DNA of 63,973 bases, the filler included, from Dimorphilus gyrociliatus (taxonomy: Eukaryota > Animalia > Annelida): the NCBI GenBank assembly GCA_904063045.1. It is 4 parts of 4 records of this genome, joined end to end, with 100 filler letters (N's around TTAATTAATTAA, not from the genome) between each part and the next. Parts side by side here need not be neighbours in the genome. Positions count along the whole stretch, not along the records: positions 1 to 18,992 come from CAJFCJ010000065.1; 3 more parts are not named here. One strand, given 5' to 3'. Positions within the stretch are counted from its first letter, which is position 1, and each line of letters begins with the position of its first letter. Under the pieces are notes generated by a model, which ran no database searches, had not been told where the DNA came from, and saw nothing but the letters and a program-made list of their open reading frames with translations. Shown here piece by piece: positions 1 to 21,892 of the stretch. Made by a program: the position numbers and the translations under genes.

Positions 1-848
1 CTGCAATTGCCATGATGTATTTCAGATAAACTACAAAAGTAATAAAGAATGAATTCTTGTTTATCACAGAGAAAATGATTGACTAAAACTACTGTCTCTC
101 TATTCAGTATGTCATTATTTTTTATTGAAAATGAAACACTTTTTGCGTCAATTAATTCATTTCTTTGAAGAGAAAAAATAAAACCTCTCTGGAGGAAAGG
201 TAGGTGAATATTTCCTACCAGTTTTGAATTGATATTCAAGTTAACATTTTCAACTATTCTTTCAGGTAGAGTATACTTGTTGATAAAGATTTGGTGTTTT
301 AAATTGTCCACCTCATCCTTAAAAGTAGTGACCACCAGTGTACAATGCACACCTTTGTTATTTACCAGTTTTGCAGTTGCACATACAAATAGACAAGAGG
401 GTGGTGTTAAGGGAATGTGTCGTATATGTAGTTCATGATTTTTACCAAAGTCTAAAAACAGGTTATCATTTTCGAGATAAGATAAATATTCTGGATTAAT
501 TTCGCATTGTTTTGCTGGTACTTTGATCCATCCGTTTGGAGACAAAGCCTCATCATCCAAACTTGAAATTTTTAACCAATTATCGTCAATTCTTATATCT
601 ATCCTGTGTGTATCTTCCTCAATAGAATCTAAAAGTTTAATTGCCAATCCACAATTTGTGGAATATTCCAAAATTCCTTTGCGTAGAGTAATAATCATAG
701 AAATTGACTTTTCATTCCAACAACAATCCGTATCCTGTTCGGTCAACGAAACACTTTTCAGTGTACCTTTCTTTCCACCTTCTTTTACACTCTCATACTT
801 GAAAATTTCAGATACAGGAGCTGTAAATTTTTTGGTGATAAATAACAT
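1..848 (-). CDS. Unknown protein, 3'-partial (at least 282 aa, runs off the window start)
   Basis: Manual translation from ATG at 848 gives 282 codons with no stop (MLFITKKFTAPVSEIFKYES...HFLCDKQEFILYYFCSLSEIHHGNC). Absent from the ORF track, probably because no stop lies in the window. No domain recognised. Confidence 0.75.
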   Translation of the reverse strand, partial: MLFITKKFTAPVSEIFKYESVKEGGKKGTLKSVSLTEQDTDCCWNEKSISMIITLRKGILEYSTNCGLAIKLLDSIEEDTHRIDIRIDDNWLKISSLDDEALSPNGWIKVPAKQCEINPEYLSYLENDNLFLDFGKNHELHIRHIPLTPPSCLFVCATAKLVNNKGVHCTLVVTTFKDEVDNLKHQIFINKYTLPERIVENVNLNINSKLVGNIHLPFLQRGFIFSLQRNELIDAKSVSFSIKNNDILNRETVVLVNHFLCDKQEFILYYFCSLSEIHHGNC

Positions 849-1249
849 TTAAGAATATTTTTCACCACTGTTATCTGTGACTATTATCGACATATTTCGT
901 CGTGTAGAGAAGACAGCAGTAAGCAGCTACAACAATGACAACTTTGCCAATCTGTTATCAAATTGATTTGTACTTTTAAAAGTATTAGAAAAACAAGTTT
1001 ATCTCAATATTTTTATCAGACAAAGTCAACAATATATAAGTCATATTGAACTAATATTGCATTGTACTTTGCTCATTGCACTTATAGAGAGATAATAGTT
1101 ATATCTGTCTCTCACTCACACCCATATGCTTTTCTCAGAAATTCTGATAAAGATTTGTTATCTTATCTCTAAAGTCTTCATATATTTCTGACGTAAATTG
1201 CCGTTCAAAACTTAATTACTATAATTCTTTATACAGGATATGTATAAAA

Positions 1250-4200
1250 ATGGCCTTTAAACTCTATCTTAGCACTATCTTAGTTGTTGATAAAAATAGA
1301 ATAACACCAAAAATGGCTTCCAACGCTTACATTATAGAAGAAGAAAGTCTAATATGTGCAATATGTTTAGAGTCATGGGTGGAAAAAGATGCAAGAGTGC
1401 TACCCTGTCAACATACTTTTTGTTTTAAATGTTTAAAAACATTAAATAAAGGTCGTTCAACGGTAAAATGCTGTTTATGTAATGGAATATTTGACATACC
1501 TGAAGGTCAGATTGGTAAGCTTAAAAAGAACATTTTAATAAATTCATTAAAAAAGATATCATCCAATGAACACATATGCCTACAACATAGTAGAGAAGCT
1601 TATATGGTTTGTAAAAATCATAATTTAACATGTCTTTGTCATATTTGTATTAACAAAGATCATTCACAATGCGAAATTATAACAATTGAACAAAACAAAG
1701 ATTTAAATAAACAAATTGAAAATTTCAAGAAAGCAGAAAATGACAATAAAAAACAACTTTTAAAATATATTGAAGAAACAGAAAAGATATGGATACAAAA
1801 AGTTAAAAAACAATTTAAAAATTTGAAAAATGATTTAAATAATATTTCTAATGAGAGGAAAAACATGGTTGAAAATAATCTACAAGAAGGAAAAAGTATG
1901 CATTATTTGCATCAACTTTTAAAAAATCTTGGTGATAATAAATTAGATTTTAAAATTTTGAATGATTTTAAATTCAAATATAAAATTGAAAATATGAATA
2001 AGTCTGAATATTTTGCAAATTGTGGGAAAGTATTGAATTATTCAAAAAAGTGTAACAGGCAACAGGAAGTGGACAATGTTATTGGGATAATGTCAAATAA
2101 TTCATATTTTGAGGAGATTGATTTGTCCAAGAATGAGAATATTGGAAATTATTTATCAAATATTTGTAATGAACTCTCCAAATCAACTAATTATTTAAAA
2201 GTAATTAATCTGAGTTGTTGTCACTTAAGAGAACAACATTGTTATTATATTCAACAACTGTTGGTCAAATGTTCAAAAATTGAGAAGATAGATATATCTG
2301 GTAACAGATACATGAAAAATTCTTTATCAATGATCTTTGATGGACTTGCTAAATCAGTAGATTCTCTGAAAGAGATAAATTTCTCTCAATGTGATATAAA
2401 TTCCTTTCAAAGTATTTCATTGGCAAATTTACTAAAAAAGTCTCCTAAAATTGAGAATATAGACCTTTCCGACAATCCTGATTTAGGATATGATTTTTTC
2501 TTAAACATCTCACTTGGATTTCCTTGTAAAAATTTGAAAAACATTAATCTTTCATCTTGTAATTTGAATGGAGAGCATACCTCAAGTATAAGAAATCTTT
2601 TAATGCAATGTCATGACATTGAAGTTTTTAATATTAGCAATAATTCTGCTATAGGATATTATTTCTGTAACATTTGTGATGGTCTTGTTCAATCTTCAGA
2701 CAGTTTAAAAGAATTAGATTTTAGCAATTGCCAATCAATTTCTAATCAAAGTGATTATTTTGGAAAAATGTTAATGAAATGCTCCAAAGTTGAACAGATT
2801 AATTTGTCTGGTATTAAATTTTCAGAAATTGAATCATTATCAAATATCTGTAAAGGATTAGAAAATTCTTCAAATACTTTGAGAAAGATTGAAATCGATT
2901 ATTCAAAATTTTCCAATGAATGGACTGAATGTGTGAAAAATTTACTGATGATTTGCCCTTTTATTGAAGAGATTTACTTTCAGCATTCTCAGGTGTACAG
3001 CAATAATATGATAAGTCTTTATCAAGGACTTTTAAAACCTTTGAATGTTTTAAGGAAAATAGGCTTTTCTCCAAATTTAATTGGTGAAAATCAAAGTCGA
3101 TTAGTTGGAGATTTACTTTTAAATTGTTACCATATTGAAACAATACAATTGTCTGGAAATAAGTACATGGCTGATGGATTTTCAAAGATATGTCAAGGAC
3201 TTTTAAATTCGAGCAGAACTCTAAAGGAGATAGAGTTTAAAAGATGTCGTATAGATCAGATACAGTGTAGAGATATTGGAGTGTTGTTGGGAAATTGTTC
3301 ACAAATTGAAAATGTAAACTTATCAGACAATTCTATGATTGGAAATTGTTTGCATAGTATATGCAATAGTCTTCTAAAATCATCAAATAGTTTAAAAATT
3401 CTGAATTTATCCTCTTGTGAAATTGATGAAAATCAGAGTAGATATCTTGGAAAATTATTAATCAATTGTTCATCAATTGAAAAAATAAACCTATCTTATA
3501 ATTCCAATATAAAACATGGATTATCAGCTATATGCGATGGTCTTAGCCAATCAGCAAACAGTTTAAAGGTGGTTAAATTTTCATCTTGTGGTATAAATGA
3601 AATCTATATTAGATGTATTGAAAAATTATCACATTTCTGCTCTAAAATTGAAATCTTAGATCTATCACGTAATCATTTAACAAGAGAATGGACTTCTAGA
3701 ATACTTAGTATATTATGGAGTGGTTCCTGTCCCATTTCTTATGGCTTTTGTAGACCCTTTAATAATTTACAAAAAATTGATTTAGCATGTTGTAGATTAG
3801 ATAGGAAACACAGTGAAAATATTGGAAAAATGTTGATGAACTGTTGTAGAATTGGAGAAATTAGATTAAATGGAAATCAGAATATGAAAACAGGATTATC
3901 TTATATTTGTGATGGACTTGTTCAATCGTCGAAATGTTTAAAAAAATTAGGATTTTCCAATTGCAATTTAGATTGGTTTGATTGTATTCATATTAGAGAT
4001 TTGTTAAGAAATTGCAAAGAAATTGAAAGTATTGATCTTTCATATAATACAAACATGAGAGAATGCTTACATGAAATTAATAGAGAACTTTGCAATTCTT
4101 CAAAAAGTCTAAAATGTGTAAATTATGAAAATTGTAATTTGAATGAAGCTGACTGTTCCTCTATTATAGAATTGTTAGCTTTCTGTCCAAGATTGAAAAG

Positions 4201-4267
4201 CGTTAATACAATGTACAATGAAAATATTAAAAGTGATATCTTTGCTTCATTTATAAGAAATAAATAA
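1250..4267 (+). CDS. TRIM-like E3 ligase: RING + B-box + coiled coil + about 12 RI-type 57-aa LRR units
   Basis: C3HC4 RING (CAIC...CQHTFCFKC...CCLC), B-box (CLQH..CKNH..CHIC..HSQC), K/E/Q-rich helical segment, then alternating 28/29-aa LRRs. The real start is probably 1313 (AAAAATGGC context shared with paralogues). Single exon. Confidence 0.92.
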   Translation: MAFKLYLSTILVVDKNRITPKMASNAYIIEEESLICAICLESWVEKDARVLPCQHTFCFKCLKTLNKGRSTVKCCLCNGIFDIPEGQIGKLKKNILINSLKKISSNEHICLQHSREAYMVCKNHNLTCLCHICINKDHSQCEIITIEQNKDLNKQIENFKKAENDNKKQLLKYIEETEKIWIQKVKKQFKNLKNDLNNISNERKNMVENNLQEGKSMHYLHQLLKNLGDNKLDFKILNDFKFKYKIENMNKSEYFANCGKVLNYSKKCNRQQEVDNVIGIMSNNSYFEEIDLSKNENIGNYLSNICNELSKSTNYLKVINLSCCHLREQHCYYIQQLLVKCSKIEKIDISGNRYMKNSLSMIFDGLAKSVDSLKEINFSQCDINSFQSISLANLLKKSPKIENIDLSDNPDLGYDFFLNISLGFPCKNLKNINLSSCNLNGEHTSSIRNLLMQCHDIEVFNISNNSAIGYYFCNICDGLVQSSDSLKELDFSNCQSISNQSDYFGKMLMKCSKVEQINLSGIKFSEIESLSNICKGLENSSNTLRKIEIDYSKFSNEWTECVKNLLMICPFIEEIYFQHSQVYSNNMISLYQGLLKPLNVLRKIGFSPNLIGENQSRLVGDLLLNCYHIETIQLSGNKYMADGFSKICQGLLNSSRTLKEIEFKRCRIDQIQCRDIGVLLGNCSQIENVNLSDNSMIGNCLHSICNSLLKSSNSLKILNLSSCEIDENQSRYLGKLLINCSSIEKINLSYNSNIKHGLSAICDGLSQSANSLKVVKFSSCGINEIYIRCIEKLSHFCSKIEILDLSRNHLTREWTSRILSILWSGSCPISYGFCRPFNNLQKIDLACCRLDRKHSENIGKMLMNCCRIGEIRLNGNQNMKTGLSYICDGLVQSSKCLKKLGFSNCNLDWFDCIHIRDLLRNCKEIESIDLSYNTNMRECLHEINRELCNSSKSLKCVNYENCNLNEADCSSIIELLAFCPRLKSVNTMYNENIKSDIFASFIRNK

Positions 4268-4571
4268 TCATTATCATATCTTTCTACTTCCTATTGTAAA
4301 AATTAAGTAGTTATTTAATTTGAAAACAGAACCAGCATAATGATTTTCATTTATTGTTACTGTGAATTTGAAATTACAACATATTATCAGCATAATCAGC
4401 ACTGTGCAATACTAGTTGAATACTACTTGTCTATTGTAGAATAGACCTGACAATTGTATGTGTTAACATTTATATATTCTTATGGTTCTGCTCACAAATA
4501 CAGTAACAAGTTTAACTTTGCTTTTACTAAACAATCTTTCATGTAGATCACTTGAGAGAAACTAAAAATAT

Positions 4572-5918
4572 TTACAAAAATTTTATCCCTGAACAATGTT
4601 TTAGTAAATTTTCAATGTCTCTTCTTTGACCTTTGTTCAAGTCGCATAACATTAACTTAAAGCTCTTCAAAGTGTTTGATGATGCTTCAAGTCCTTCGCA
4701 AATCCTCAATATTCCCTTACCCATCTGTCTATTTCCAGATAGATCTATTGATTCTATTTTAGAACAATGTTTCAACAAATTTCCAAACAGTGTACTTTGA
4801 TCTTCATTTAATTGGCAATGTTTTAAACTGAGAACCTTTAAACTGTTTGATGATTCTTGAAGTCCATCACAAATATTCATTTTGCCTCTACCCATCTCTT
4901 TATTCCAAAAAAAACTTATTGATTCTATTTTAGAACAATGTTTCAGCATGTTTCCAATCTGTGTACTTTGATCTTCATTTAAATTACACCCATTCAAATG
5001 AAGACTCTTTAAAGTATTTGAAGACATTTGAAGTCCCTCACAAATATTCCATATACCTTTACCCATCTGTCTATTGCCAGACAGATTTAGTGTTTCAATC
5101 CTACAACAATGTTTTAGTGCATTTCCAATCTGTTTACTTTGTTCTTCGTTTAATTTGCAATATTTTAAACTAAGATCCTTCAAAGTGTTTGATAACACTT
5201 GAAGTCCTTCACAAATATTCAATATTCCCTTACCCATCTCTATATTCTTAGATAGATAAATTGACTCTATTTTAGAACAATGTTTTAGAAAATTTCCAAA
5301 CTTTCTACTTTCATTTTCATTTAAATTACACTCATTTAAATTTATACTTTTTAAATTATTTGATGATATTTCAAGTCCTTCAAAAATATTCATTATTAAT
5401 TTACCCACCTCTCTATGCCCAAAAACACTTACTGTTTCTATTCTTGAACAATGTTTTAGCAAATTTCTTATCTGGACACTTTGTTTTTCATTTAAATCAA
5501 ATAGACTTAAATCAAGATTCTTTAAAGTGTTTGATGATAATTTAAGTCCTTCACAAATATTCAATATTCCATCACCCAAATTATTCCTCAACAGATTAAT
5601 TGTTTCTATTCTGGAACAATGATTCAGCAAATTTCCAATCTGTTTACTTTGATCTCCATTTAAATTACACATATTAAAATTAAGGCTCTTTAAAGTGTTT
5701 GATGACATTTGAAGTCCTTCACAAATATTCAATATTCCCTTATCCATCTGCCTATTTCCAGAGAGATCTATTGATTCTATTTTAGAACAATGCTTCAAAA
5801 AATTTCCAATCTGTTTACTTTGATCTTCATTTAAATTACATAGCCTTAAATCTAGATTCTTCAAAGTATTTGATGACATTTGAAGTCCTTCACAAATACT
5901 CAATATTCCCTTACTCAT
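4572..5918 (-). CDS. LRR-only protein (about 8 highly similar 57-aa RI-type units)
   Basis: 448-aa open frame made entirely of repeats such as LKNLDLRLCNLNEDQSKQIGNFLKHCSKIESIDLSGNRQMDKGILNICEGLQMSSNT. Confidence 0.8.
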   Translation of the reverse strand: MSKGILSICEGLQMSSNTLKNLDLRLCNLNEDQSKQIGNFLKHCSKIESIDLSGNRQMDKGILNICEGLQMSSNTLKSLNFNMCNLNGDQSKQIGNLLNHCSRIETINLLRNNLGDGILNICEGLKLSSNTLKNLDLSLFDLNEKQSVQIRNLLKHCSRIETVSVFGHREVGKLIMNIFEGLEISSNNLKSINLNECNLNENESRKFGNFLKHCSKIESIYLSKNIEMGKGILNICEGLQVLSNTLKDLSLKYCKLNEEQSKQIGNALKHCCRIETLNLSGNRQMGKGIWNICEGLQMSSNTLKSLHLNGCNLNEDQSTQIGNMLKHCSKIESISFFWNKEMGRGKMNICDGLQESSNSLKVLSLKHCQLNEDQSTLFGNLLKHCSKIESIDLSGNRQMGKGILRICEGLEASSNTLKSFKLMLCDLNKGQRRDIENLLKHCSGIKFL

Positions 5919-6135
5919 TTATCTTTTCTCAGATAAACTTTTTGAGTTAATTTATTCTTTGGAAAACAATGGTAAAAAGTGTGAGTCTTTAAAATGTTTG
6001 AGAATTTTTTCAGTCAAATCCAAAACAATATGTGCATTAACAAGGAAGTACTTTCACATTATTTCCTACTCAAGATTCCAAACAAATTCCATGTTTAAAT
6101 TAATCTTTATTGTTAACATCTTGATTGGCGGCCAT
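5919..6135 (-). pseudogene. Decayed RING-finger 5' end of the LRR-only gene
   Basis: From AAAATGGCC at 6135: MAANQDVNNKD*FKHGICLES*VGNNVKVLPC*CTYCFGFD*. This aligns with paralogue CxICLESWVxxxxRVLPCQHxFC, has several stops and is out of frame with the 5918 ORF. Confidence 0.8.
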
Positions 6136-7899
6136 TTTGAAATGGTGACTAATTCGTTTGTTTATTTTTTTTATGTTTAAAATCTTCTGTTGAAATTTGT
6201 TGTACAATTTTAAATATCATATCAAAGTGTAAAAATCTGCTTTATTAAAATGAATTTAGATTTTATAATATTGTTTATAGATACTAAATCAGAAAAGATT
6301 GATAAAGGGTATTCCTAAAACATGGACTGAATTTTCGTTGAGAGGTAGTACTGGAAAGTGCTGACAACACGTATGAATCTGGATTTACTACTGGCACTGT
6401 TGTTATAAATTGATTTTTTAACGAATTGTTTCTTTTAAGAAAATGATTTAAAATATTTCGAATTGTCGCTTTTGTATTTAAATGTTTTGTACATAAAGTA
6501 TGACAATTGGTCAGGCTATTTTTCACTGATATCTGAGTAGTGTTGACAATATGTGTTGATTGTTGTAATTCAACATTTATGGTTGAATTTGAACTGATGT
6601 TTAAAACTAAAAAAAAATAAGATATCTTAAATTGAAATACTAGAAAAAAAAAAGACATGGTTCATATTTACCAGTTAAGCAGATTAACTTGAGTACAGCT
6701 ACTGAGTACATATGAATTTTTAAATTTTCATTGGGAGAAAGTGTGATGATGTCAGTGATTCCTTCAAAATAGTAGATATTATCAGTTAGAGTTGATGTAA
6801 CATCAACAGATTCTTTGATGATAGTCTGAATTCCTTGTTTATTTTCTAGAACTGAAGAAAAATATAAATTGTTATATTTAAAAATTGAAGAGAATCCTGC
6901 ATCATTCTCTCTCTCTCTCTCTACAGTACCAGTCCAATGAGCACCCAAAAGAATAACTATTTAAATTTAATCCAGGCTTTACTGCTGTAGTTACAGTAGT
7001 TTTACAAATACTTTCATTTTCATCATTAAGATGCTTTTGCAGCGTTATATTAAAATTTGTCAAACGTTCAGCTGTACAGAGTAGTTGATTAGAGAAAAAT
7101 GTCATCCCTACTGCTTTTACTCACCATAGCTTTTTCTATTTAACAAACAAACTCTATTTATGGAATAGATGTTTTTCAAATCCGCCATCCACCAACCATA
7201 ATCTTGACTTTGAAACGTGTGACTGCATCGATATATTGTTTCAAACAAACGAATAAGAATACTTAATTACCCGTGCGATAAAGTAGAATGAGGAAGGAGA
7301 ACATGATCTGAAATGATGAAATTTTTTCTTTCCCATATTAGTAGATCATTGTTGTAAATTCTGGAAAAGATAGACAACGAAATTAATAATTAATATTTAA
7401 GAAAAGGTTAGCAAAATTATTTTTTTTTAAATAAAATTTTGAACATTAATGATTGAGAATTTATGAATTATTCAATTAATCAGTCCTTTATTCACAAAAT
7501 GTTACTTTTAAATAGCTAAATAATAAAGTTTTATAAAAGAAAAATGTAACTAACATTCAACAGCAATATTATTAATATCTTATATTTGCAGTCTATTCTG
7601 AAAAGGTTAGGTTAGGTTGCTGAAGCTGATTGATAGATTTTTGGAGCTACGGATTAGGTCTGTTGAGTCACAGGAGTTGGCTAGTGCTTATATTAGGCGG
7701 GGTTTATCTTCTAGGAATGATATAACTTTATCAACACGCTCCTTTTGAATTCTCTTTTTGAATGTAACATTTTTTGAATTCGATTGATGAATTATAGGCT
7801 CTAATCTTTGTTTTCTTCCATCCAAATCTATCATTGTGAATATTTTTAACTTTGGTATGTGCCTGTTAAATTTGAATTTTATATTCTTTCCTGTTAGAT

Positions 7900-8925
7900 C
7901 TTTATGGTCTATTCAATAATAGATTTCTTGAAGGAAAAAAAGATCTAAAAGTTGGTGTTGAAATAAAAAGGGAACTAAAAAACTTACGCCAAAAAGATTA
8001 TGCTACAAGTGGAAGAAAACTGGCTGAAACAGTTCTGCTTAATAACCAGGAAAATACTGATTTTCTACCAAACCTTCAATGTTTAAAAAGGATGGCCAAT
8101 TCAACCAGGCAAAAAAAGAGGCCAATGGAACCAAAAGATAATGATTTTGAATTAAATATGGATTTCATACCAGCTTATAAATTGGCATTTAAAGTAAGTG
8201 TATAACTAATTATATTTTCAGTTTGTTAACTTTTAAATAATTCTCTGCAGACTATTAAGAAAATGATTAACTTGTCAGAGCCTGAAAAAGTCATTTTAGA
8301 CTTTGAGATGGCACTATGGAAAACAATAATAAAAGTTTTTCCAAATACAACAATACATGGATGTGTTTTTCATTGCACTCAAGCAATTCATAGGAAAATT
8401 CAGGTAGATCTATTATTTAAATCAACATCTTATTTCATAATTAATTTGTTATTATCAGTCTCTAGGATATTCCAAACAATATGCGGTGAAAGGAGAAGAA
8501 TGGAGAGATCTAAGGAAAATCATGGCATTACCATTTCTGCCATCTGATATCATCATTTCAACATTTGACAGACTCAAGTCTGAACTTTTAGAATAACAAA
8601 AATTTTCTGACCTACTGTTGTATTTTGAAAATTCATGGATATGTAATTCTATGTGGAAACCTGAAAATTGGTCAGTCTTTGGTCTATCAATTATCAGCAT
8701 GGAATTTTATTTCTTTGCACAACACTTCCTTTTACTAGATTATTACCAATTCAAATTGAAACCAAATTGGATTGAAAATCATTAAAAATTCTTAAACTGT
8801 TGAATAAAATGTCAATTTTTTCTTTCCAACAACTGTTATTTCTGTAAGAGCAAATTCAGCTGAACCAACTAGTTAGCGGGTGAAACCATACCCATACCAG
8901 GTTAAAATGTTTCACCCCTATTCAA
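7900..8925 (+). mobile_element. Decayed MULE (Mutator-like) transposase with introns
   Basis: VILDFEMALWK...GCVFHCTQAIHRKIQ, then SLGY..WRDLRKIMALPFLP..WKPENWSVFG. GT-AG introns at 8194-8250 and 8404-8458. GGGTGAAACC / GTTTCACCCCTATT end motif near 8878-8925. Outer limits are approximate. Confidence 0.75.
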
Positions 8926-9863
8926 CCAACTTGTGTAGCTGTAATTTATGCAATTTGCCTAGGAAGTATCTAAGGATCTAGCCCTGGAATAGAAGAATGC
9001 ATTCAGTAGATAAATTCTAATGTGAAAGTTCCACCACCATAAACTGGAAATACAGCAATCTCAGTGGGTAACGAATGTTGGCTTGATATAGTAATTCTAA
9101 AGCTAAATTTTGCAGATAAACTGTTTATGTTTGTTGACATCTTGGAATAAAATATTTTGAATTAACATAAAAAAAGGAATTTTTTAATAAAATCAACCTT
9201 TTTTAGCATAGATTCTTGTTTTCAGAGTGGCAATCATTGATTCACATCCCCTAGTGCAAGTAATAGTTGTAGTAACCATGAAAGTTGTTGTGATACTTCC
9301 AATCAAATTATCTGGTATGATTATTAAAAATAAGTGTAAACAAGGGGATCATTTGAAATCTGATCCATATGAAATTGCATCAAGTTTAAGTCAAAGCCAG
9401 TTTATTTAATTGGTATGAGTATTTTCTTACAAAAAGTGTTATCTTATTGTACTTTGTTGTATTGTAATTGTAGGAATTTCTGTCTCTTCACAACAGTAAT
9501 CGTCCTTTCCAATCAATTTACGAAATTTGCCAAAGTACTCTCACACAAATAGAACCTCAAGTTCATCCACAAAATACTAACCTTTTATTATGAATTCTGT
9601 TTTAAAATAATAGCAATCTATTAAACAAAGTTCACAGTTTTGCCAATGGAATGTGTATTGAGTATATGAGTTCCCATTCATATTATATAAACTGGTTACC
9701 TGTTCCATTTAATCTTCTCTAGTTAAATGAGATTATGGTTAATAAAGGAGTTTAACCATAAGTTTTTAACCATTGGTTGCTACGGAAAGATTCTTAATTA
9801 ACAAATCTTTGTTATAACTGGAAGAAAAATTGACTGCAGTTAGCTTTAAATTTTTCAATAAAA

Positions 9864-11321
9864 ATGCTTCGATCTAATAGACGTCTGAAGAAAAGGCATG
9901 GCAAGGCATATGTAATAAAAGAGGAAAATGTTATGTGCGCAATCTGCAGGGAATCTTGGGTTGATAAAAATCCAAGAATACTTCCTTGCCAACATACATT
10001 TTGCCTTGAATGTTTGGAGAATGTACCAGTAAATTACTCAAAAATTAAATGTTCCCTTTGTAGATTTGAATGTAATTTACCTGGTGATCAAGTTGCTAAT
10101 TTACATAAGCCTTACTTTTTAAGTTCATTTGAAAGAGTAGAAGTAAATAATGATTTATGCCCGATACACAATGAAGAGAAGATATTATTTTGCCAAAGTC
10201 ATAATATTGAAAATCTTTGCTTGCAATGCCATGATGAAAATCATTCCTCATGTAAAATAATATTGATGACAGCACTGAAAAAAAGAAAGGATGTCATAAG
10301 AAAATGCCTTGCTTCTGAACAGAAAATTTTAGATTCTTCATTAAGAGAAATTGAGCAATGTCAGAAAGAATTAATATTAAAACTACAAAATGATTTTAAA
10401 TTTGTAAAGGAAAAAATGAAAGATACAATAAAGAAAAGAGAAAAAATCTTGAAAACATCTCTTCTATGGTTAAATAATGGCAAAGATTTTTTTGATTTTG
10501 TAACATCATTTTCAAATAATCAACCAAAATTTAAACTAGTCGAAGGGTTAAATTGGAAATATGAGATTGAAAATGATGAATATTTATCTGAATTTACTCA
10601 AAAATCTCTTGATTTTTCAAAGAACTGCTCTTCAGCAAGACTAGTAAATCAAATTAGGAAAAAACTTGAACAAAATCAATTTATAGAAAAAATAGTTCTT
10701 TCAGAAAATTGTAATAGGCTAAATGATTTTAAAGATATTTGTCAAGAATTGGCAAAATCATCAGATACTTTAAGAGAAATAACAGTTACTGGTTGTGACT
10801 TGATTGCTGAACAATTGTATGAAATTGGAAATCTGTTGATTAGTTGTTCAAAAATTGAGAAAATAAAACTAATAGGAAATGTGGCTAGATCATCATCAAA
10901 TACCTTATCAAGACGTCTATCAGTTTTAAGACGTCTATCAGCTTTAAGACTCTTATCAGCACAACAATCAAGAGAGACAACAATGGAGGATGCAACAGAA
11001 GTTTTATGTCAGGGACTTTACTTTTCAGCAGCTACATTAAAAGAAATACATATAAGTGCATGTAGATTGAATGGCAACCATTGCATACAGATTGGAAAAT
11101 TGTTGGAAAAATGTTTCAATATAAAAATATTAAATCTGTCATATAATAAAGATATAAAAGATGGAATAGAAAATATCTGTTCAGGACTATTGAATTCAGC
11201 TAATACCTTAATGGAAGTAGATTTCAGCAATTGTTCATTTGATGAGGAAATTCAAATGGAAATTTACAATTATTTATGGCATTGTCCAAATCTTGCACAG
11301 ATTCTCTTGGGCTCTGATTAA
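9864..11321 (+). CDS. TRIM-like RING + B-box + coiled coil + short LRR (2-3 units)
   Basis: RING CAIC..CQHTFCLEC..CSLC; B-box CPIH..CQSH..CLQC..HSSC; LRRs at the C-terminus. Single exon. Confidence 0.9.
   Translation: MLRSNRRLKKRHGKAYVIKEENVMCAICRESWVDKNPRILPCQHTFCLECLENVPVNYSKIKCSLCRFECNLPGDQVANLHKPYFLSSFERVEVNNDLCPIHNEEKILFCQSHNIENLCLQCHDENHSSCKIILMTALKKRKDVIRKCLASEQKILDSSLREIEQCQKELILKLQNDFKFVKEKMKDTIKKREKILKTSLLWLNNGKDFFDFVTSFSNNQPKFKLVEGLNWKYEIENDEYLSEFTQKSLDFSKNCSSARLVNQIRKKLEQNQFIEKIVLSENCNRLNDFKDICQELAKSSDTLREITVTGCDLIAEQLYEIGNLLISCSKIEKIKLIGNVARSSSNTLSRRLSVLRRLSALRLLSAQQSRETTMEDATEVLCQGLYFSAATLKEIHISACRLNGNHCIQIGKLLEKCFNIKILNLSYNKDIKDGIENICSGLLNSANTLMEVDFSNCSFDEEIQMEIYNYLWHCPNLAQILLGSD
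10910..10960 (+). repeat. In-frame 18-bp tandem repeat (x3, third copy partial) inside an LRR
   Basis: AAGACGTCTATCAGTTTT / AAGACGTCTATCAGCTTT / AAGACTCTTATCAGC, encoding RRLSVL RRLSAL RLLSA. Confidence 0.85.
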
Positions 11322-11451
11322 CTTTTTAAAAACATTTGTATGTCTATGTTATCCCAATATAGAGAACTGTCATTTTGTTTTTCTTAGACAAATAAACAAC
11401 TACATATCCATGTAAGAATATTTGATTTTTGCCTTATGGTTGATAAGAAAG

Positions 11452-12385
11452 AATAGGGGTGAAACCGTACCTGGGTTAAACCTAACCACTAGAGGGTTAA
11501 ACCGTACCCATTTTTTATTTAATATATTGTATATGTTTATTAAACTTGTGATAATGAAATCTATGTTATACTGATACAATGTATATAGCCAAATATATAA
11601 AGATGCATTTATCTAAACAATTAAAAGAATTAAAACGGAAATGAAAAGAAAAAGAGAATATGAAATGTAGGTAAAATCTATGGAGCATATATATCAGATG
11701 TTTTTTAGCAATAATTCATCTGCTAATATTTCCTAGTTTTGTATTCATCCCAAATGTCAAATATTTTTTTTTCTCTCTTCATATACTTATGTCCCTGATA
11801 TCTATATATTTGTTTCTCAGACATCACCTTTTCATAGATAATCATCCACTAATATGTAGAATGAGCCTTTTGAATGCACTTGACTATTCATCCTGTTGTA
11901 CCAACCCTCCAGACTATTATTTGTTCTAATTGATAGACCAAACACTGACCAATTTTCAGGTTTTCACATACAATTACATATCCAAGTACTTTCAAAATAC
12001 AACAGTAGGTCAGCCAATTTCTATTGCTCCAGATAAGAAATAAGTGTTTAAAGGCATCAACTATGAATATAAAAATCTGTTGGTTTTGTATGAAAAAGTT
12101 TTACTATAACCAACCAATGGAATGTCTGAAGTGATTAAAAAATCACTGTTTTGAGTTGAAATTACTTACCTATCAAATTATTCTTTTCTAAATTCAGAGA
12201 TTCAGTAGTTTGCTTAAATTCTTGTTGACCATAATTCTTTGATCTCTAAAGTCTAAATATTGGTATAAAATTATATCTAAGTGTAAAATTATATGTCTTA
12301 GTATTCTCTATTTAAACATTTTTGGAATACAAATACCAGTTTAAAATTTTGAGTCAGCCATTTTAGGTATGATTTCACCCCTATT
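11452..12385 (-). mobile_element. Non-autonomous MULE derivative with terminal inverted repeats
   Basis: AATAGGGGTGAAACCGTACC at 11452 and an imperfect inverse GGTATGATTTCACCCCTATT at 12366-12385. Internal minus-strand KLADLLLYFESTWIC..KPENWSVFGLSIRTNNSLEGW. No TSD found. Confidence 0.7.
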
Positions 12386-14282
12386 TGCTTGCTGAACTGA
12401 ACTGAGCTTCTGAACAAAATTTGAGCAAAACCAAGCAGTTTTCCAGCTATGGCAGTTTCAAATTGACAGTGGTAGGTGCAGTTAATGCCTTACTCTCTCT
12501 TACTACTATACCACCCTATGTTCTACACCACCAACTATTGTCCTATTTTTCTATTTCCTATGAAATAGAAGTCAAATGTAGTTGATAACCTTTATTGTAC
12601 AATAAACAACTTTGATGACTTTTTTTACTTGAGAATTTTGCATGGTGGAAAGGTGATTTGGGAATAATTTGTTAGTTTTTTTGCAATATCAATTATATCA
12701 AGACCTTTCGGTGCAGAAAGATCTAAACATATTCATGAAAATTGCCTGACACCACTCCTACATCAGATATATTTTATTTCAATTACTCAGTAAAGTTTTT
12801 GTTATTTTTCAATATTTTGCAACCTTCTACTTTATTATTTATGAAAATAAATATTAAAAGATGTAGAATATGATTGAGGTAAAAGAAATTTTAGTAGCTT
12901 GAATTCAATCAAACTCTTGTGATAAGGTGGGCTGGGGTTCAAATCCTTAATAAGAATTTTGGGAAGAGTAGCTCTGGTTTCAACAGCTCCTGGTCTTTAA
13001 ATGATTAGGCTTAAAAAACAATGCATAATCAGTCAAAATTTATTTGATAGAATGTAACAAATATCACTCTGCTATTAATAGCTTCATAAAGCCTGACTAA
13101 ATATAAAAAAATTGACGTTTTTCTTTTTTTAAACAGTTTATTAATGAAGTAAAAAAAGATATTTGTTTTGCTAGGTTGTAAATCTTGATCAATACAGCCT
13201 TTGGCTATTCTTCATTTCCTGGCTTGGTTCGCTAAGAAAGCAAAAAATTATAATAGAAAACAGCATTAGTAAATGGATTCTACCCTATCCCGAACTCAAA
13301 CCCTTGTCTGTACCTAACCTTTGATGAGAAGCTCCTATATGCAAAAACAATTACTGTTTTCATTTTCCTACTACTTTTCAATCTAAAATCCATCATTGAC
13401 CAAGTTTTGTGTAGAGTGGTGTGTATACAATGTGCCACAACAAATTCTATTAATTATAGACAAATATTGTAATTGTAACCTTAATTTAATATTATAATTT
13501 AATTAATACTGTATATTTATCTATTAACTCAAATTCAGATCACTTTGCTTAAATGTCAATTATGCTTTCATTTGAAGTTTTAGATTTTAATCATTATAGA
13601 CAACATGCAATAATCAGACATACTTCCTCTGCAAATATTGATGCTAAATTTATTAACTGAAACAATTAATTATTATTATTAAAGTAGAATGTAAAAAAAC
13701 AGTCAAACATAAAATTCCCTTTAATTCAACCCTTTAAAGAGTATATAAACCCAACAAAATTAACAGTTGATACCCTAAATCTAACCTAGCCTAACTTTAA
13801 CCTTGATTGGAAAGGATGATTACATCAGCTGATGTTAATTGTTAATTCTTTTTTCAAACAAATATTTTACTCAAATTTTTAAAATGAACAACATGTTTTT
13901 TTCCTTTCCCTTTGTACTTTATTGTATTGTAATGTTAGAATTTCTGGTCTTCCACATCATTATTTTTCTTTTTGTATCAAATACTGTGGAGTATACTACT
14001 TGGGATGCATTTCAAATAGATATCTGCTTATAGAATGGCAGATATCAAAAAGCAGCATTTTTGAAGGTTGCTTCATGGATTCTTATCGATGCAAAAGTGT
14101 TTGCTGATTTATTGATAAAATGTTCATTCTGATTGTAATTTGCCAAGTAATATATAAACAAGCTGATAATGATTTGTATCATCTTCATTTTTCATTATAT
14201 ACAATTAACAGAAAGCAAAATCTCATGTTCAAAATCATATAACAATTTTTAACAATATTTTAATAAATGCCTAATCTTTAAC

Positions 14283-15507
14283 TCAACATCTTGATGATTG
14301 TTGAAGTCCTTCACAAATATTTATTATTCCATTACTCATGTTGTCATTCCAATATAGAGTCATAGTTGTTATTTTTGAACAATGTTTCAGCAAATTTTCA
14401 AACTTATCGCAGTGTTTTTCAAGTAAATTACATCTACTTAATTCCAGAATCTTCAAACTACTTGATGACCTTTGAAGTCCATCAAAAATATCCAATATTC
14501 CATTACCGATTTGTTCATTCACAGTTAGCTTAATTGTTTCTATTCTTGAGCAATAATTTAGCAAATTTCCAATATACTTTCCTTGTTTTTCATTTAATTC
14601 ACACCAACCAAATTTCAAATATTTCAAAGTATTTGATGACATTAGAAGTCCTTCACAAATGTTTGATATTCCATCAACTATCTTCATATTCGCTACTAAA
14701 TTGATAGTTTCTATTCTAGAGCATTGATTTAATAAATTTCCAATCTCTTTACTCTGCCTTTTATCTAAATCACACCAACCCAATTCCAGTGACCTTAAAC
14801 TATCTGATGACATTTGAAGTCCTGCAACAATATTCAGTATTCCATTGCCCATACTTATATTTTTTGATAGATTTAAATTTTGTATTCTAGAACAATGATT
14901 TAATAAATTTCCAATCTCTTTACTTTGTTTTTCATCTAAGTAACTGATATAGCTTAAGAGAATTTAAAGTATTTGATGACATTTTAAGACCTTCACAAAC
15001 ATTTATTATCCCATCACCCATTCTTTCATTACAAGATAAATTTATTGACTTTATTCCAAAGCAATGTTTTAGTAAATTTCCAATCTCTCTACTTTGTTCT
15101 TCGTTCAAATTGCAACTATTTAAAAAAAGGTTATCTAAAGTATTTGATGACGTTTGAAGTCCTTTACAAATGTTCAGTATTCCTTTATTCTTAATTAGTA
15201 AATTACCAATATCTCTACCTTGTTTTTCATCTAATTCACAAAAATTTAAGTTCAGAGTCTTTAAACTAGTTGATGACATTTTAATTCCTTCACAAATTTT
15301 TAACATTCCATTATGAATTTGTTTAGTGCGGTTTGGTTGACATCTTGAACAAAGGATTTGATCATTTTCAACTTGCTCTTGTTTTAAACATTTACTACAC
15401 AATAGATGTTGACAACGAAGTATATTTTCATTATTTTCTACACAAAACTCAAAACAAATGGCACATGCCAGTTTCTGTTGATTATTCTTAGCTGTTATGG
15501 TCGCCAT
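14283..15507 (-). pseudogene. RING-LRR gene lacking B-box/coiled coil, frameshifted near 14945
   Basis: ORF 15507-14932 has a RING with its zinc ligands (CAIC..CQHLLCSKC..CSRC) running straight into LRRs. LRRs resume in another frame (LDEKQSKEIGNLLNHCSR...) through 14852-14283. There is an internal LRR deletion. A sequencing error cannot be excluded. Confidence 0.8.
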
Positions 15508-15992
15508 TTTGAATTTTCTACAATTTTTGTTTACTCTAGCAGAAATTTAATACTTGCTTTTATTTTATGTTTAATGCAATATTTCATAAATGTCTATTTT
15601 TAAATTGTAAATATCCATGCAATTTTTTAGAAATTAAAACAGTAATTATTAATAATTATTACAAATCGGTATTACTAAATCATGGTGGGAAAAATATTTG
15701 AAGTCTAGGAAAAGATTTGCTGAAAGATATTGCAGCTTTAGAGACAAAAAGTTTCAGTTCATAAAAAATCCTCTTTGTGATGCTTTAGTGTAAGGTTTTC
15801 CAAACAAGTGGTACAGAATGTCTTGGCTAAAGGGATGAAATATCCCATGTAATGATGAACATTAAGGATACAATTGTTATCAGTTTGACCAGTATTGTAT
15901 AAAATGTTTTTGTATAGAATTTATCTAATGATAATAATAAGACATAGTTCAATACTATATTTTATCTACTTTTGTGACAACATAAACTAAAA

Positions 15993-17996
15993 ATGGCTGC
16001 TGTATATTTTGTTGATGGAGAAAATTTTGAATGTGATATCTGCTTAGAATCTTGGGTAGAAAATGACTCCAGAGTGCTCCCCTGTCAACATAGCTTTTGT
16101 CTTAGCTGCTTGAAGAAATTACCAATAATAGGTAGCAAACAGGAAATTATTTGCCCACATTGTAGAGAGAAGTGTAAAGTGCCTGATGGGGGAATTGAGA
16201 AGCTAAGAAGGAATTTTTGTACAAGTTCATTGCAGAAAGTACAGCAGACAAAGGTTGGCGAATTATGCTTAAAGCATCAAAGAGATTCATCTCTATTTTG
16301 TAAAACTCACAATATTGGCAATCTTTGCGCTCTGTGCTTTGATGAAAATCACGTGAATTGTGAAATGACAACTACAAGAAGAGTTGAGAAAGAGAAGAAT
16401 AAGCTGCAATCTTTAATAATTGAAGAAAGACAAAATGGAGAAAATCATCTGATAGAAATTGAAGAAATGGAAAAATCCTATAAAGAACAACTCGAAAAGG
16501 AATTTAAAAAAATTAAAGATGAATTCAAAAAGATTAGCACAGGCAGAGAAGAGTTACTCATTAAATTCATAGATCAAAACAGTGGACAAGAAAATTCGTT
16601 TGAAATGTTGAAAAAATTTTTGGAAAAGAAGCCAAAAGTAAAAATATCAAACAACTTTCACCTTAACTATCAAATAGAGAATAAGAATTTTAAAAATTAT
16701 CTTAACATTTCAAATTCTAAAGCAGAGAAATCAAAGAAGAAAGTTGAGAAGGATGATAAATTTCAGATAAGGAAAATTGATGTATCTGGAAAAAATATAA
16801 TGGGTGAAATGTCATACATTTCTGATATTATTCAAAATTCTTTGAATATTATACAAGAATTCAATTTTCAAAATTGCAATTTAGTCAAAGATCAATGTGT
16901 AACTATTGGAAATTTATTGAAGAAATGTTCCAAAATTCAGGTAATAAACCTAGAAAGAAATTTAATGATGGATGGTGGATTATCAAATATATGCAATGGA
17001 TTATATAAATCAACAAATTCTTTAAGAGTAATTAACTTTTCGGATTGTAATTTAAGAGAAAATGATTATAAAAATGTTAAGAATCTATTGAAGAATTGTT
17101 CAAAAATTGAAATATTCAAAATGGCAAACAATAGTAGTAATTACGAATTACGTGATTTGAATGACATTTTTGCTGCATTGGTAAAGTCGACGAGTAGTTT
17201 AAAAGAGATTAATGTTCAAAGTTGTAGTTTGACCATGAACAGTGCAAATTCCATTGGTTTCCTGTTGAGGAAATGCTGTAAAATTGAAAGATTCAATGTA
17301 GGCTATAATCAATTTATGTTTGGTGGATTGTTAAATATTTTTGAAGGATTGGCAGAGTCGGCTATTTCATTGAAAGAATTAAATTTTAGCGCTGTATCTT
17401 TAAATGAAATTATGTGCAATGGTTTAGATGATCTGTTGAGAAAATGTTCCAAAATTGAGTCATTTACTATAGCACAGAATACAAATATGAGACTGGGATT
17501 GTTCAAAGTTGTTGATGGACTTTTGAATGTGTCAAACACTTTAAAAAGGATTGATTTGTCACAATGCTACATAAATGAAATGACTCATGAATGTATTGTA
17601 AAGCTTTTAAATAAGTGCAATAGAATAGAATCAATCAGCATTGCGCATAATCCAAATATGGGATATGGATTTGTAAATGTTTGTAAGTGTCTTCATAAAT
17701 TTTCCAATACTTTGAAAGAAATCAACTTTACAAATTGTCGCATGACTGAATTTCAAGTTACAGCTGTTGGACAGTTGTTTATGAAATGTTCAAAATTGGA
17801 AAGAGTAAATTTTACAAGGAATTCTTTTACTGATGATGGATTACATAACATTTGTAGTGGACTCTTAAAATCATCAAATACCCTAAAAGAAGTAAATTTT
17901 TCTCTCTGTTCTCTTAGTCAATCTTTAATGAAAGATGTGAAACATTTACTAAAGAATTGTTCAAAACTTGAAATATTAGATTTATCGCTAAATTAA
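15993..17996 (+). CDS. TRIM-like RING + B-box + coiled coil + about 7 LRR units
   Basis: RING CDIC..CQHSFCLSC..CPHC; B-box CLKH..CKTH..CALC..HVNC; E/K-rich helix; RI-type LRRs. Single exon. Confidence 0.92.
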   Translation: MAAVYFVDGENFECDICLESWVENDSRVLPCQHSFCLSCLKKLPIIGSKQEIICPHCREKCKVPDGGIEKLRRNFCTSSLQKVQQTKVGELCLKHQRDSSLFCKTHNIGNLCALCFDENHVNCEMTTTRRVEKEKNKLQSLIIEERQNGENHLIEIEEMEKSYKEQLEKEFKKIKDEFKKISTGREELLIKFIDQNSGQENSFEMLKKFLEKKPKVKISNNFHLNYQIENKNFKNYLNISNSKAEKSKKKVEKDDKFQIRKIDVSGKNIMGEMSYISDIIQNSLNIIQEFNFQNCNLVKDQCVTIGNLLKKCSKIQVINLERNLMMDGGLSNICNGLYKSTNSLRVINFSDCNLRENDYKNVKNLLKNCSKIEIFKMANNSSNYELRDLNDIFAALVKSTSSLKEINVQSCSLTMNSANSIGFLLRKCCKIERFNVGYNQFMFGGLLNIFEGLAESAISLKELNFSAVSLNEIMCNGLDDLLRKCSKIESFTIAQNTNMRLGLFKVVDGLLNVSNTLKRIDLSQCYINEMTHECIVKLLNKCNRIESISIAHNPNMGYGFVNVCKCLHKFSNTLKEINFTNCRMTEFQVTAVGQLFMKCSKLERVNFTRNSFTDDGLHNICSGLLKSSNTLKEVNFSLCSLSQSLMKDVKHLLKNCSKLEILDLSLN

Positions 17997-18588
17997 TTTT
18001 TAATTTACTCAATAATTTCCTAAATCTGATAAATTCACTCTTGATTTTTAATAATCTTCCTAAGATTTTTTATTATACAAATACATAATCAAAATATTTA
18101 TGGCAGAGTCAATCGAGGTTTAGTTCAAGTTTAACTAATTTGTTCAAAATAGAATATTTAATCAAAAAACTGATAGCCAAATTATCCAAGCTAGCATCCA
18201 ACCAGAAAGAGTAGTTGTCTTCTTCTAGCAAATGTTCACAAAAACAAAAGTTGCAAATATGCTGATGGTGTCTTTCCAAAGGTGGGTTATAAGTGGATAC
18301 AACATAAAACATCCCCAAATGTATGGTTTAACCGTAACCCTAACCTAGCCCTTATCTCTCCTTACCCCTGACCCCTAGATGGAACTCCCCTAACTACAAA
18401 TCGATCGCTACTTCACTCGTCCTAACCACTTTTCAATCTGAAATGTTGCTTTCAAAAATATCACTTGGGGATGTTTTCTGTTGGCCTCGTTATAAGTAGA
18501 TGAACACTTTTTAACTATATCAGTGGAATACTAGCTCAATACTTCTTGTCTACAGAAATATGATTAGACAAATACAATACTAAAAAAA

Positions 18589-18681
18589 ATGGCTGACAGT
18601 TTCTACTTGACAAAAGAAGAATATTTCACTTGTGCAATTTGTTTAGAAACAAATATTACAGTAAATAATTTTCGGGTCTAG
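18589..18681 (+). pseudogene. Truncated start of another TRIM-LRR paralogue (half RING)
   Basis: AAAAATGGC start; MADSFYLTKEEYFTCAICLE then unrelated sequence and a stop. Confidence 0.7.
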
Positions 18682-18992
18682 GTTCTGACAAAATGCTCAC
18701 CAAGACATCTTTTCAACAACAATCTATCATCATCACTTATCTTACAGCCTACCAGACTGAGAAAACAACGATGACGTGGGAAATTTGCCAATGCGTCACA
18801 TATCCTCATAAATCCATCCTCAATCAATGGATTATTGTTCAAGACTATATTCCTTATTTTGAAACATTCATTTAAAAGATTTGCAACACTAACACATTTC
18901 TCAGCATTCAAGTTACAATTGTTTAAAAAAAGCACCTCCAAAGTGTTTGATGACTTTTCTAGTGAATCACAAATGATTTTAATATCATTTGA
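18678..18992 (-). CDS. C-terminal part of an LRR gene, 5'-truncated by the scaffold end
   Basis: IICDSLEKSSNTLEVLFLNNCNLNAEKCVSVANLLNEC... same LRR family; the frame is open up to the spacer. Confidence 0.75.
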   Translation of the reverse strand, partial: SNDIKIICDSLEKSSNTLEVLFLNNCNLNAEKCVSVANLLNECFKIRNIVLNNNPLIEDGFMRICDALANFPRHRCFLSLVGCKISDDDRLLLKRCLGEHFVRT

Positions 18993-19092
18993 NNNNNNNN
19001 NNNNNNNNNNNNNNNNNNNNNNNNNNNNNNNNNNNNTTAATTAATTAANNNNNNNNNNNNNNNNNNNNNNNNNNNNNNNNNNNNNNNNNNNN
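18993..19092. other. Synthetic contig spacer
   Basis: 44 N + TTAATTAATTAA (19037-19048; stops in all six frames) + 44 N. Confidence 0.97.
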
Positions 19093-19326
19093 AGAATGCT
19101 TAGAGTTGATAACATGTGGAGTTAATGAAATAATACTAGAACCAGTAAATGAAATATCGTTATTACAAACAATACAAAAGTACTTGAAAATATTTGAACC
19201 TTCTTCTAAGTTTAGTAGAATGAATGAAGTTTAATAAAAGCTGTAAATAAATTTTAAATTTCCTTATTTATATAAATATTATTTTTATATAAATTTTAAA
19301 TTTTCTTATTTATATAAACATTATTT

Positions 19327-20480
19327 GGTGGGTGGGAAGTTCATTACCCCTTCGATCAAAAAATGATTTTTTTGGAAAATACGAGAAGTAGTAGGGGAAG
19401 GGCATAAAAGTTATTCAAAAAAAATTTTTTTTTGTGTTAAACAAAAATAACACTAGAAACAAAAATAATTAAAAATTCTCTTTAATAATACTAAAAAAGC
19501 TTCATTTCCATACTTTCTTAAAAAAAAGCACTTAGCAAATATATATTCCATATATTGACTCGATGAAAGGCAGTTTCTTCTTATATATTGCTTTAGGAGA
19601 GACCATTGATTTTCAATTGCTTGAGTATTAGCTCCGGTATGTGGATCTATAAAGTTCTCATTGTGGTTCACTTTATCATGAATATAGCCCATAGATGATA
19701 ATTTCTCATATCCAGGCCAGCCATCTGTATAAATAATTGAGTTTTTTTCAATATATTTTTCAACAATTTCATTTATAGTGTTTTTTCTTCTATTATCTAC
19801 TTCTTTAAAAAATGTTTTTTTGGTATAAATATCAATTCCACCTATTATTCACTTTTTTTTATATATTCTTCCAATGTTATATTTTCTTTTAGAACATAAG
19901 CTTTCATCTATTTCGACTATATGTCCTGGACCTCCAATTTTTTCATTCATTTCATTACTCATTATTGTGTATATAGTAAAGTTTAAGATTTTATTCCACT
20001 TTGTGATAGTTTTAACAGTTAAATCTTTTAGTTCTTTTATTATCTCGAACCAATTCATATACATATTACAAAAAAAATAAACATAGTCCAAAAAAATGTG
20101 TAATTTTATCTTTGTTCTTTTCATTACTGTACTTTCAAAAATGGAGTTATGATTTTTACAATTATAACACTTATATCTGAATGTGTCTAAATGTTTAATA
20201 ATAATCATCTCCTTGTTTATACAAGTTGGACATCTTCTAGTTCGTTTTATTAAATTTTTATTAACAAGGAAGTCAATTGTTCTGTGTTCATCGGATGTTG
20301 CTAATACTAATTCTCTATAGTTCATTAAGGGAAAAATATAAATTAAATGAATAAAACCTTTATTTTAAAAAGATTAGAAAAAAAAATTTGAAAAAAAATT
20401 CAAAACCCTTCTTCTAAATTTCCTCTAGATCACAAAAAAATCATTTTTTGATCGAAGGGGTAATGAACTTCCCACCCACC
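19327..20480 (-). mobile_element. Merlin (IS1016/ISXO2-like) DNA transposon, near intact
   Basis: Perfect 48-bp TIRs (19327-19374 / 20433-20480) and 8-bp TSD CATTATTT. Transposase 20325-19453 has a Zn ribbon, VEIDES, YTDGW and TQAIENQW, with one in-frame TGA at 19849-19851. Confidence 0.93.
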
Positions 20481-20644
20481 CATTATTTTCCTTATATAAA
20501 CATTATTTCCCTTATTTATATAAATATTATTTTTATATTTTATTAATAAGTATTATTTTACTCTAATTATTATATATTAAACTAAATAAATAAAAATAAT
20601 ATTAATAATAAAATACATTAAAGTCTTTATTTAATAAAGTTTTG

Positions 20645-21244: not shown

Positions 21245-21788
21245 GGGTGTTCTATTTGGGTTTAATTTAAACTTTATATGTACAAAAAAGGAAAGTGATG
21301 GTACATTTTGTGATTACATAAACTCTCAAAATGTCATAAATCGTTGTTTTGACTGTTTTTTATAAAAATAAAAATATAACAAAATTCTAAAAAATTAAAA
21401 TTTACCTCCAAAATTTGAAAATGTAATGTTTCAAAATACAAACCTAAGTCTGTAATTTTAATTAAATTTTAATAAAAATCAATTAGATTTAAAAACTGAA
21501 AGTTTAAAAGTCTAGTATTTATAAGAGATTTGAATTTTATATGTTTTAATGGTGTCATTTAATGTTTTATATTAAAATTTATCTAAATTTAGGTTTTTAT
21601 CTGTTTTTGTTGAATATGTAATTAATGTTGGTTTACTGATGATCAATCACTTAATCCATTTATGGAATGAGTAGGGAGGGAATTAAAATACATTGATCTT
21701 TAGATCTTTCTGTCAAAAAACAGTGGAATACGTTTGTCAAATAAAAAAGGTAAATTAAGGTTAACAAAATATAAAATATACTAATTGG

Positions 21789-21892
21789 TTACTATTTATG
21801 ATTCTTTAAAAATAAAGATTTATAGTAAAATTGTACTAAGTATTTACTATTTATGATTCTTTAAAAATAAAGACTTATAGTAAAATTGTACT
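21789..21892 (+). repeat. 49-bp direct duplication, period 55
   Basis: TTACTATTTATGATTCTTTAAAAATAAAGA(T/C)TTATAGTAAAATTGTACT at 21789 and 21844. Confidence 0.85.

Follow-up and report, generated by a model that had tools for sequence, protein, structure and literature searches.

We describe a branch of the TRIM protein family in which the familiar head, composed of a RING finger, a B-box and a coiled coil, is followed by leucine-rich repeats (LRRs) of the type found in ribonuclease inhibitor (RI) and in NLR proteins. Three intact, intronless genes of this kind, here termed A, C and D, are present in the annelid Dimorphilus gyrociliatus, in the first piece (positions 1 to 18,992; G+C content 28%) of the window, by which we mean the whole stretch of 63,973 nucleotides that was joined from four parts of this genome. 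The piece is derived from contig CAJFCJ010000065.1 (163 kb) of assembly GCA_904063045.1. The reading that we favor, with a probability of roughly 0.6, is that these TRIM-LRR proteins represent a lineage-restricted branch of TRIM E3 ubiquitin ligases whose propeller tail was replaced by RI/NLR-type LRRs, that their LRRs would direct ubiquitination, and that the family turns over in tandem arrays, for which a role in defence or genetic conflict would be the best fit. This reading builds on the architecture, the fold, the conservation of residues in the catalytic module, the restricted distribution and the turnover of the family, all of which were computed here. The three intact genes are as follows:

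1250-4267, plus strand: gene A, intact intronless TRIM-LRR gene; 1005 codons; RING, B-box2, coiled coil and 12 LRR double units
9864-11321, plus strand: gene C, intact intronless TRIM-LRR gene; 485 codons; RING, B-box2, coiled coil and 3 LRR double units
15993-17996, plus strand: gene D, intact intronless TRIM-LRR gene; 667 codons; RING, B-box2, coiled coil and 7 LRR double units

A TRIM head and an RI-type LRR tail in one polypeptide

Genes A, C and D are uninterrupted open reading frames (ORFs) from ATG to stop codon. Since about 8% (roughly one in 12) of random codons are stops at a G+C content of 28%, a chance origin of frames of 485-1005 codons is excluded; judged by these frames, selection maintains the three genes in an open state. 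The family consensus suggests that the true start of gene A is probably the ATG at 1313. An earlier inspection of the DNA by eye (the sequence-only reading) had already assigned RING, B-box, coiled coil and RI-type LRRs to three intact intronless genes, and this assignment was borne out by domain profiles, by phmmer searches and by an AlphaFold2 model of the gene D product.

Pfam RING models match A, C and D, as well as the RING piece (F) of a decayed copy, locus F+E, that is described below. A family profile constructed from six N-termini matches solved fragments of TRIM2 and TRIM3 (E-value about 1e-14) across RING and B-box, and the match to TRIM3 reaches into the coiled coil. Matches to the Pfam zf-B_box model are weak but recurrent (20.4 bits in gene C; 24.7 bits in the paralogue P0001, where 24.1 is the cut-off). 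When 33 family members, which are 23-38% identical to the gene D product, are aligned, the eight zinc ligands of the C3HC4 RING show little or no variation, and the eight ligands of the B-box, arranged as C-x2-H-x7-C-x2-H-x5-C-x2-C-x4-H-x2-C, are conserved to at least 90%. The hydrophobic E2-contact residue after the first Cys pair (position 16) is kept in 31 of the 33 members and Pro55, which precedes the last Cys pair, in 25; the linchpin position 58 is occupied by Lys or Arg in 22 members, while the others possess no basic linchpin. The residues through which RING E3 ligases hold the E2 enzyme are mostly kept, a sequence proxy for activity from which E3 function is predicted.

The proteins carry both the RING and the B-box that mark membership in the TRIM/RBCC family; the type of C-terminal domain sets the class of a TRIM protein, not its membership in the family. 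None of the catalogued C-terminal classes (PRY/SPRY, NHL, COS-FN3, PHD-bromo, MATH, ARF, filamin, transmembrane) was found in A, C and D, whose tails consist of RI-type LRRs. These three genes code for a true TRIM head combined with an NLR-type LRR tail. The claim of the sequence-only reading that LRRs are no canonical TRIM tail agrees with their absence from Marin's 2012 survey of TRIM diversity; likewise, the terms TRIM-LRR, RING-LRR and B-box-LRR do not occur in the searchable literature, in which this architecture is undescribed. A feature search of the ESM Atlas did return clusters that combine a B-box with LRR_4/LRR_8 (unknown taxa, scores below 0.9, to be taken as leads only), so that B-box/LRR fusions as such may not be unique.

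The C-terminal parts of the proteins match ribonuclease inhibitor (phmmer, E-value 4.5e-19) and the LRRs of NLRP5, NLRP7, NLRP3 and NLRP14. The repeats alternate between 28 and 29 residues, corresponding to a period of 171 bp, or 57 codons, in the DNA, and according to a purpose-built hidden Markov model of this 57-residue double unit, A has 12 of them, C has 3 and D has 7, where about 12, 2-3 and 7 had been estimated by eye. A structural model had been proposed as a check of the domain assignment; the AlphaFold2 monomer model of the gene D product (mean predicted local distance difference test score, pLDDT, 87) contains a TRIM head of RING, B-box and helices, a disordered linker (residues 212-260) and a horseshoe of 15 LRR strands. 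One unbroken helix spans residues 128-195 and a second one residues 200-211 (pLDDT 84-93). In Foldseek searches, the best matches of this model were ribonuclease inhibitor (template modelling score by target 0.75) and NLRPs, with the LRR of FBXL2 also among the structural matches, and a shape search of the ESM Atlas returned LRR proteins only. The absence of NACHT noted earlier was corroborated by a Pfam-type domain scan, which revealed no NACHT/NB-ARC, F-box, signal peptide or other domain in the proteins of the piece, and the interval between RING and LRRs in the gene D model is filled by B-box, helix and linker, without a NACHT domain. Pfam matches of the LRR proteins to ZSWIM1-3_C, RRM_1, DUF4347 and GATase_3 were discarded as repeat noise, as no single stretch was significant. 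The LRR domain of gene C is interrupted at 10910-10960 by a tandem repeat of 18 bp (2.8 copies, 91% matches), which stays in frame and adds a stretch rich in Arg, Leu and Ser.

Decayed copies, family spread and phylogeny

The remaining features of the piece are the following:

4572-5918, minus strand: locus B, LRR-only ORF; 448 codons, 8 double units
7876-8782, plus strand: remnant of a Mutator-like element (MULE) transposase, in several frames; significant domain match only at 8230-8544
14283-15507, minus strand: locus F+E, frameshifted RING-LRR copy without B-box and coiled coil
18681-18992, minus strand: C terminus of another LRR protein, comprising roughly 1.5 units, tail and stop codon; cut by a gap

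At least four more paralogues or fragments had been counted by the sequence-only reading. Further copies do exist, but tblastn searches of the piece with its own proteins place them in three loci (four ORF pieces), all on the minus strand (4566-5990, 14286-15534 and 18687-18992), and no family copies were detected in the piece beyond these and A, C and D. At the DNA level, locus B stands out as 7.4 tandem copies of a 171-bp unit; its array runs on upstream to about position 5990 in a decayed form that contains stop codons, and neither RING nor B-box nor coiled coil was found upstream of it. Locus B is a 5'-truncated copy. Locus F+E, which is arranged head to head with gene D, has kept all eight zinc ligands of its RING, which is fused straight to LRRs. 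A single frameshift near 14945 divides this locus into the ORFs 14932-15507 and 14283-14852, and since the contigs of two independent studies are identical at this site, the frameshift is real and not an error of assembly.

The third locus stops at the right edge of the piece, which is an assembly gap, filled with N in the public contig. One contig each of the sequencing runs X1 and X2 extends beyond position 18992, with an inverted copy of 14059-14126 following after about 385 nucleotides, and public reads could probably close this gap. The summed contig depth of run X1 climbs from about 130 to about 5900 at 18200-18600, to 940 at 13600-13800 and to 2200 at 14600-14800; these peaks are multi-copy sequence: near 18200-18600 lies an interspersed repeat, and a short segment that codes for LRRs is common to many copies.

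To follow the taxonomic spread of the family, which the sequence-only reading had named as a check, we used an exhaustive protein search with a profile of the N-terminal head; word-index queries that contained LRRs were swamped by LRR words and gave just 5-6 matches. The head profile produced 8742 matches at E-values below 1e-3, 685 below 1e-10 and 38 representatives below 1e-30. RI-type LRRs, in numbers from 2 to 19 double units, are present in about 41 of the best 150 matches. All named TRIM-LRR proteins among these 150 are uncharacterised proteins of D. gyrociliatus, and the other TRIM-LRR matches that could be traced stem from the Logan assemblies of SRR23372216/28/29/31, that is, from one AT-rich organism which, judged by its DNA, is not D. 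gyrociliatus but is probably related to it. Within the best 150 matches, the architecture is restricted to these two organisms. D. gyrociliatus possesses at least ten intact TRIM-LRR genes. In the second organism, contig 1709 of the Logan assembly of SRR23372229 carries, at 147-20213, five uninterrupted TRIM-LRR ORFs of about 1160 amino acids, arranged in tandem on the same strand within 20 kb; they are 38-48% identical to each other, and the last one is cut by the end of the contig.

Both organisms also contain a second clade of proteins of about 500 amino acids with the same head but without LRRs. In the model (pLDDT 81; structural matches to WD40 and NHL proteins), the C-terminal half of these proteins adopts a beta-propeller fold. 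This propeller tail is divergent and unrecognised by Pfam; the D. gyrociliatus members P0020, P0028 and P0054 correspond to CAD5114617-23 and form a tandem array on one 4.5-Mb scaffold. The next match with known domains after the propeller clade is an amphioxus TRIM-NHL protein.

In a maximum-likelihood tree of the TRIM head, whose backbone is poorly resolved, the propeller clade received a support of 100 in the Shimodaira-Hasegawa-like approximate likelihood ratio test (SH-aLRT), and the copies of both organisms interleave in it. All LRR copies of the second organism cluster together (support 89) and separately from the D. gyrociliatus copies, and the LRR branch of this tree contains no orthologue pairs between the two organisms. 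Genes A, C and D are not mutual nearest relatives and sit on terminal branches of about 0.7-1.2 changes per site. Because of the poorly resolved backbone, the direction of the swap between propeller and LRRs is unsettled in this tree; in our reading of the sequences, a propeller-tailed TRIM would have exchanged its tail for LRRs, and the family would then have expanded separately in each of the two organisms. The description of the family as one that evolves by birth and death stands up well, given intact genes beside truncated and frameshifted copies, a variable number of repeats and the separate expansions.

Proposed function and competing explanations

TRIM ligases and LRR receptors both belong to the main tool kits of innate immunity in animals and are normally found on separate proteins. 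Extrapolating from TRIM biology, the coiled coil of a TRIM-LRR protein would mediate dimer formation, the concave face of its LRRs may bind a protein or another ligand, and the RING would recruit a charged E2 enzyme and transfer ubiquitin either to the target that is bound or to the ligase. The family turns over as copies are duplicated in tandem, change in their number of repeats, become truncated and decay, and it sits in repeat-rich, poorly assembled DNA. The pattern of turnover leans toward defence or conflict, although an immune role, like E3 activity and LRR-mediated targeting, is deduced.

Several known systems resemble parts of this arrangement. TRIM-NHL proteins of class VII (TRIM2, TRIM3, TRIM32, TRIM71) show the same order of N-terminal modules and provide the best sequence match, and the head is held in common with the TRIM-beta-propeller sister clade of the same two organisms; where TRIM-NHL proteins end in a six-bladed propeller, TRIM-LRR proteins carry a horseshoe of RI-type LRRs, and the model gives them a short coiled-coil helix of about 68 residues. 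The PRY/SPRY immune TRIMs (TRIM5alpha, TRIM21, finTRIMs), with a TRIM head, a variable recognition domain and tandem expansion, are the working analogy that we propose, although the recognition fold of TRIM-LRR proteins differs. Positive selection has reportedly been documented for finTRIM and TRIM5. Animal NLRs and ribonuclease inhibitor share the LRR type and are the best matches in sequence and structure; unlike NLRs, TRIM-LRR proteins possess neither NACHT/NB-ARC nor a death-fold effector, and their output module is a RING E3. FBXL proteins are similar in their LRRs only (FBXL2), since TRIM-LRR proteins contain no F-box. LRRs and E3 activity are likewise combined in one polypeptide in LRSAM1 and in the bacterial IpaH/NEL ligases. 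LRSAM1, however, begins with LRRs of a different type and ends with its RING, which reverses the order of domains, and it also has a SAM domain; IpaH uses a NEL cysteine ligase domain, and neither of them has a B-box. A family that joins TRIM and LRR would show another coupling of recognition to ubiquitination and would extend the TRIM catalogue by one C-terminal class. Since the genome of D. gyrociliatus is very compact and has few expanded families, the gene set is small and tractable. The genome paper of this species (PMC7854359) reports no more than nine expanded families, which consist mostly of immune genes duplicated locally.

Variation along the LRR surface was assessed in locus B, whose units have diverged under coding constraint (median ratio of nonsynonymous to synonymous substitution rates, dN/dS, 0.46). 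Positions were split by the motif LxxLxLxxN/C, which was defined beforehand. The ten x positions of the concave face display a mean entropy of 1.41, compared to 0.74 at the other non-core positions (permutation p 0.01), and dN/dS amounts to 0.98 on the concave face, 0.34 in the rest and 0.18 in the core. This variation has the pattern of a putative binding surface on a constrained scaffold.

We also inspected how the locus is represented in public annotation and sequencing runs. Gene C is the only annotated gene in its 21-kb public stretch; its product is identical to P0006 and is encoded once, on CAJFCJ010000065.1, which bears out the species that the sequence-only reading had suggested. The gene D product has no exact match on record. 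Because A and D are left out, family sizes taken from the public annotation are too low. Contigs of four runs were placed on 13000-18992; X3 and X4 stem from the genome study and had their type guessed as 'DNA?'. Contigs of X1 and X2 cover the whole interval. In X4, depth is found in all 18 bins across 14200-15599 and 15800-17999, the span of F+E and D, and in none of the intergenic bins (13000-14199, 15600-15799, 18000-18992); contigs of X3 add 13950-14138 downstream of E and 15822-16000 upstream of D. The G+C content is alike in covered and uncovered parts. This pattern looks RNA-derived and suggests that gene D and the frameshifted F+E are transcribed, from libraries whose type is off record and contigs that carry neither strand nor transcript ends.

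Several observations weigh against the reading that we favor. Genes A, C and D are old paralogues with 30-35% identity and give no sign of a recent burst. The nine expanded families are not named in the text or supplements of the genome paper (PMC7854359), which give no link between them and the TRIM-LRR genes. Two of the three intact genes, A and D, received no call in the annotation of the genome project, and no run on record as RNA contains the locus. A dN/dS value near 1 on the concave face of locus B speaks for relaxation, not for positive selection, and in eight paralogues of about 1160 amino acids from the second organism no concave-face excess was found, as all surface positions vary alike. 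The evidence for selection across the LRR arrays is mixed: of the diversifying selection that the sequence-only reading had named as a check, the excess in locus B stands, but it does not extend to these paralogues, and positive selection is not demonstrated.

The even variation of these paralogues would suit ordinary substrate-receptor E3 ligases for endogenous proteins, active for instance in the germline or in development, which would be the TRIM counterpart of FBXL proteins and would not sense non-self. The FBXL2 LRR among the structural matches of gene D points in the same direction, as does the fact that the closest TRIM relatives, those of the TRIM2/3/NHL class, act on endogenous targets. 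Yet the LRR branch, unlike the propeller branch, has no orthologue pairs between the two organisms, the repeat number spans 2-19 double units, and truncated and frameshifted copies beside intact ones are atypical of conserved housekeeping adaptors; we regard such a function as possible but doubtful. We are equally tentative about the most specific form of a defence role, in which TRIM-LRR proteins would be NACHT-less cytosolic pattern-recognition receptors that convert ligand sensing into ubiquitin signalling or degradation and that originated independently in dinophilid annelids through a propeller-to-LRR swap in a TRIM-NHL-like ancestor. The cluster could, finally, be largely a graveyard of unexpressed and decaying duplicates, or consist of LRR scaffolds with a pseudoligase RING. 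The gaps in annotation and in RNA records would fit this, as would the truncated, frameshifted or gap-cut state of three of the six loci, the transposable-element debris among them and the missing basic linchpin in some members. We nevertheless judge it unlikely, for frames of this length at 28% G+C would not last without selection, the zinc ligands are kept across the 33 members, dN/dS at scaffold positions is 0.18-0.34, and the contigs of X3 and X4 are confined to gene bodies.

The debris includes the MULE remnant which the sequence-only reading had recognised and which was verified by a match to PF10551 (8230-8544, E-value 4e-6) that covers only the C-terminal half of the domain. This remnant, together with a 99-nucleotide inverted repeat (90% complementary) that brackets gene C at 8595-8693 and 11927-12025, could be taken to mean that a MULE-type transposon carries the genes as cargo or has spread them, as a Pack-MULE would. 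The similarity of the arms ends at about 95 nucleotides, however, similar arms are absent around A, B, D and F+E, and clusters of the family on other contigs have different neighbours, which makes this explanation very improbable. Capture of gene C by a Pack-MULE was rejected, the inverted repeat being merely about 95-99 nucleotides long; since the similarity stops there, its arms are probably two pieces from a single repeat family and not the trace of a capture event. The left arm adjoins the MULE remnant.

Further observations in and around the locus

On CAJFCJ010000096.1, about 6 kb from the TRIM-LRR paralogue P0001, a gene at 18335-22139 encodes a caspase-like Peptidase_C14 domain and gives faint NACHT matches; no RI-type LRRs were found in the part of this gene that was examined. 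A gene resembling a DDE_3 transposase lies between it and P0001. At the left end of the piece, an open frame of 282 codons (3-848, minus strand, ATG at 848) runs off the edge. No Pfam match was obtained for it, and the ESM Atlas yielded weak leads only (0.79); its G+C content of 32% is slightly above that of its surroundings, and it is absent from the public annotation. A non-coding repeat at 9447-9573 is common to a second contig of the D. gyrociliatus assembly that is equal in G+C content.

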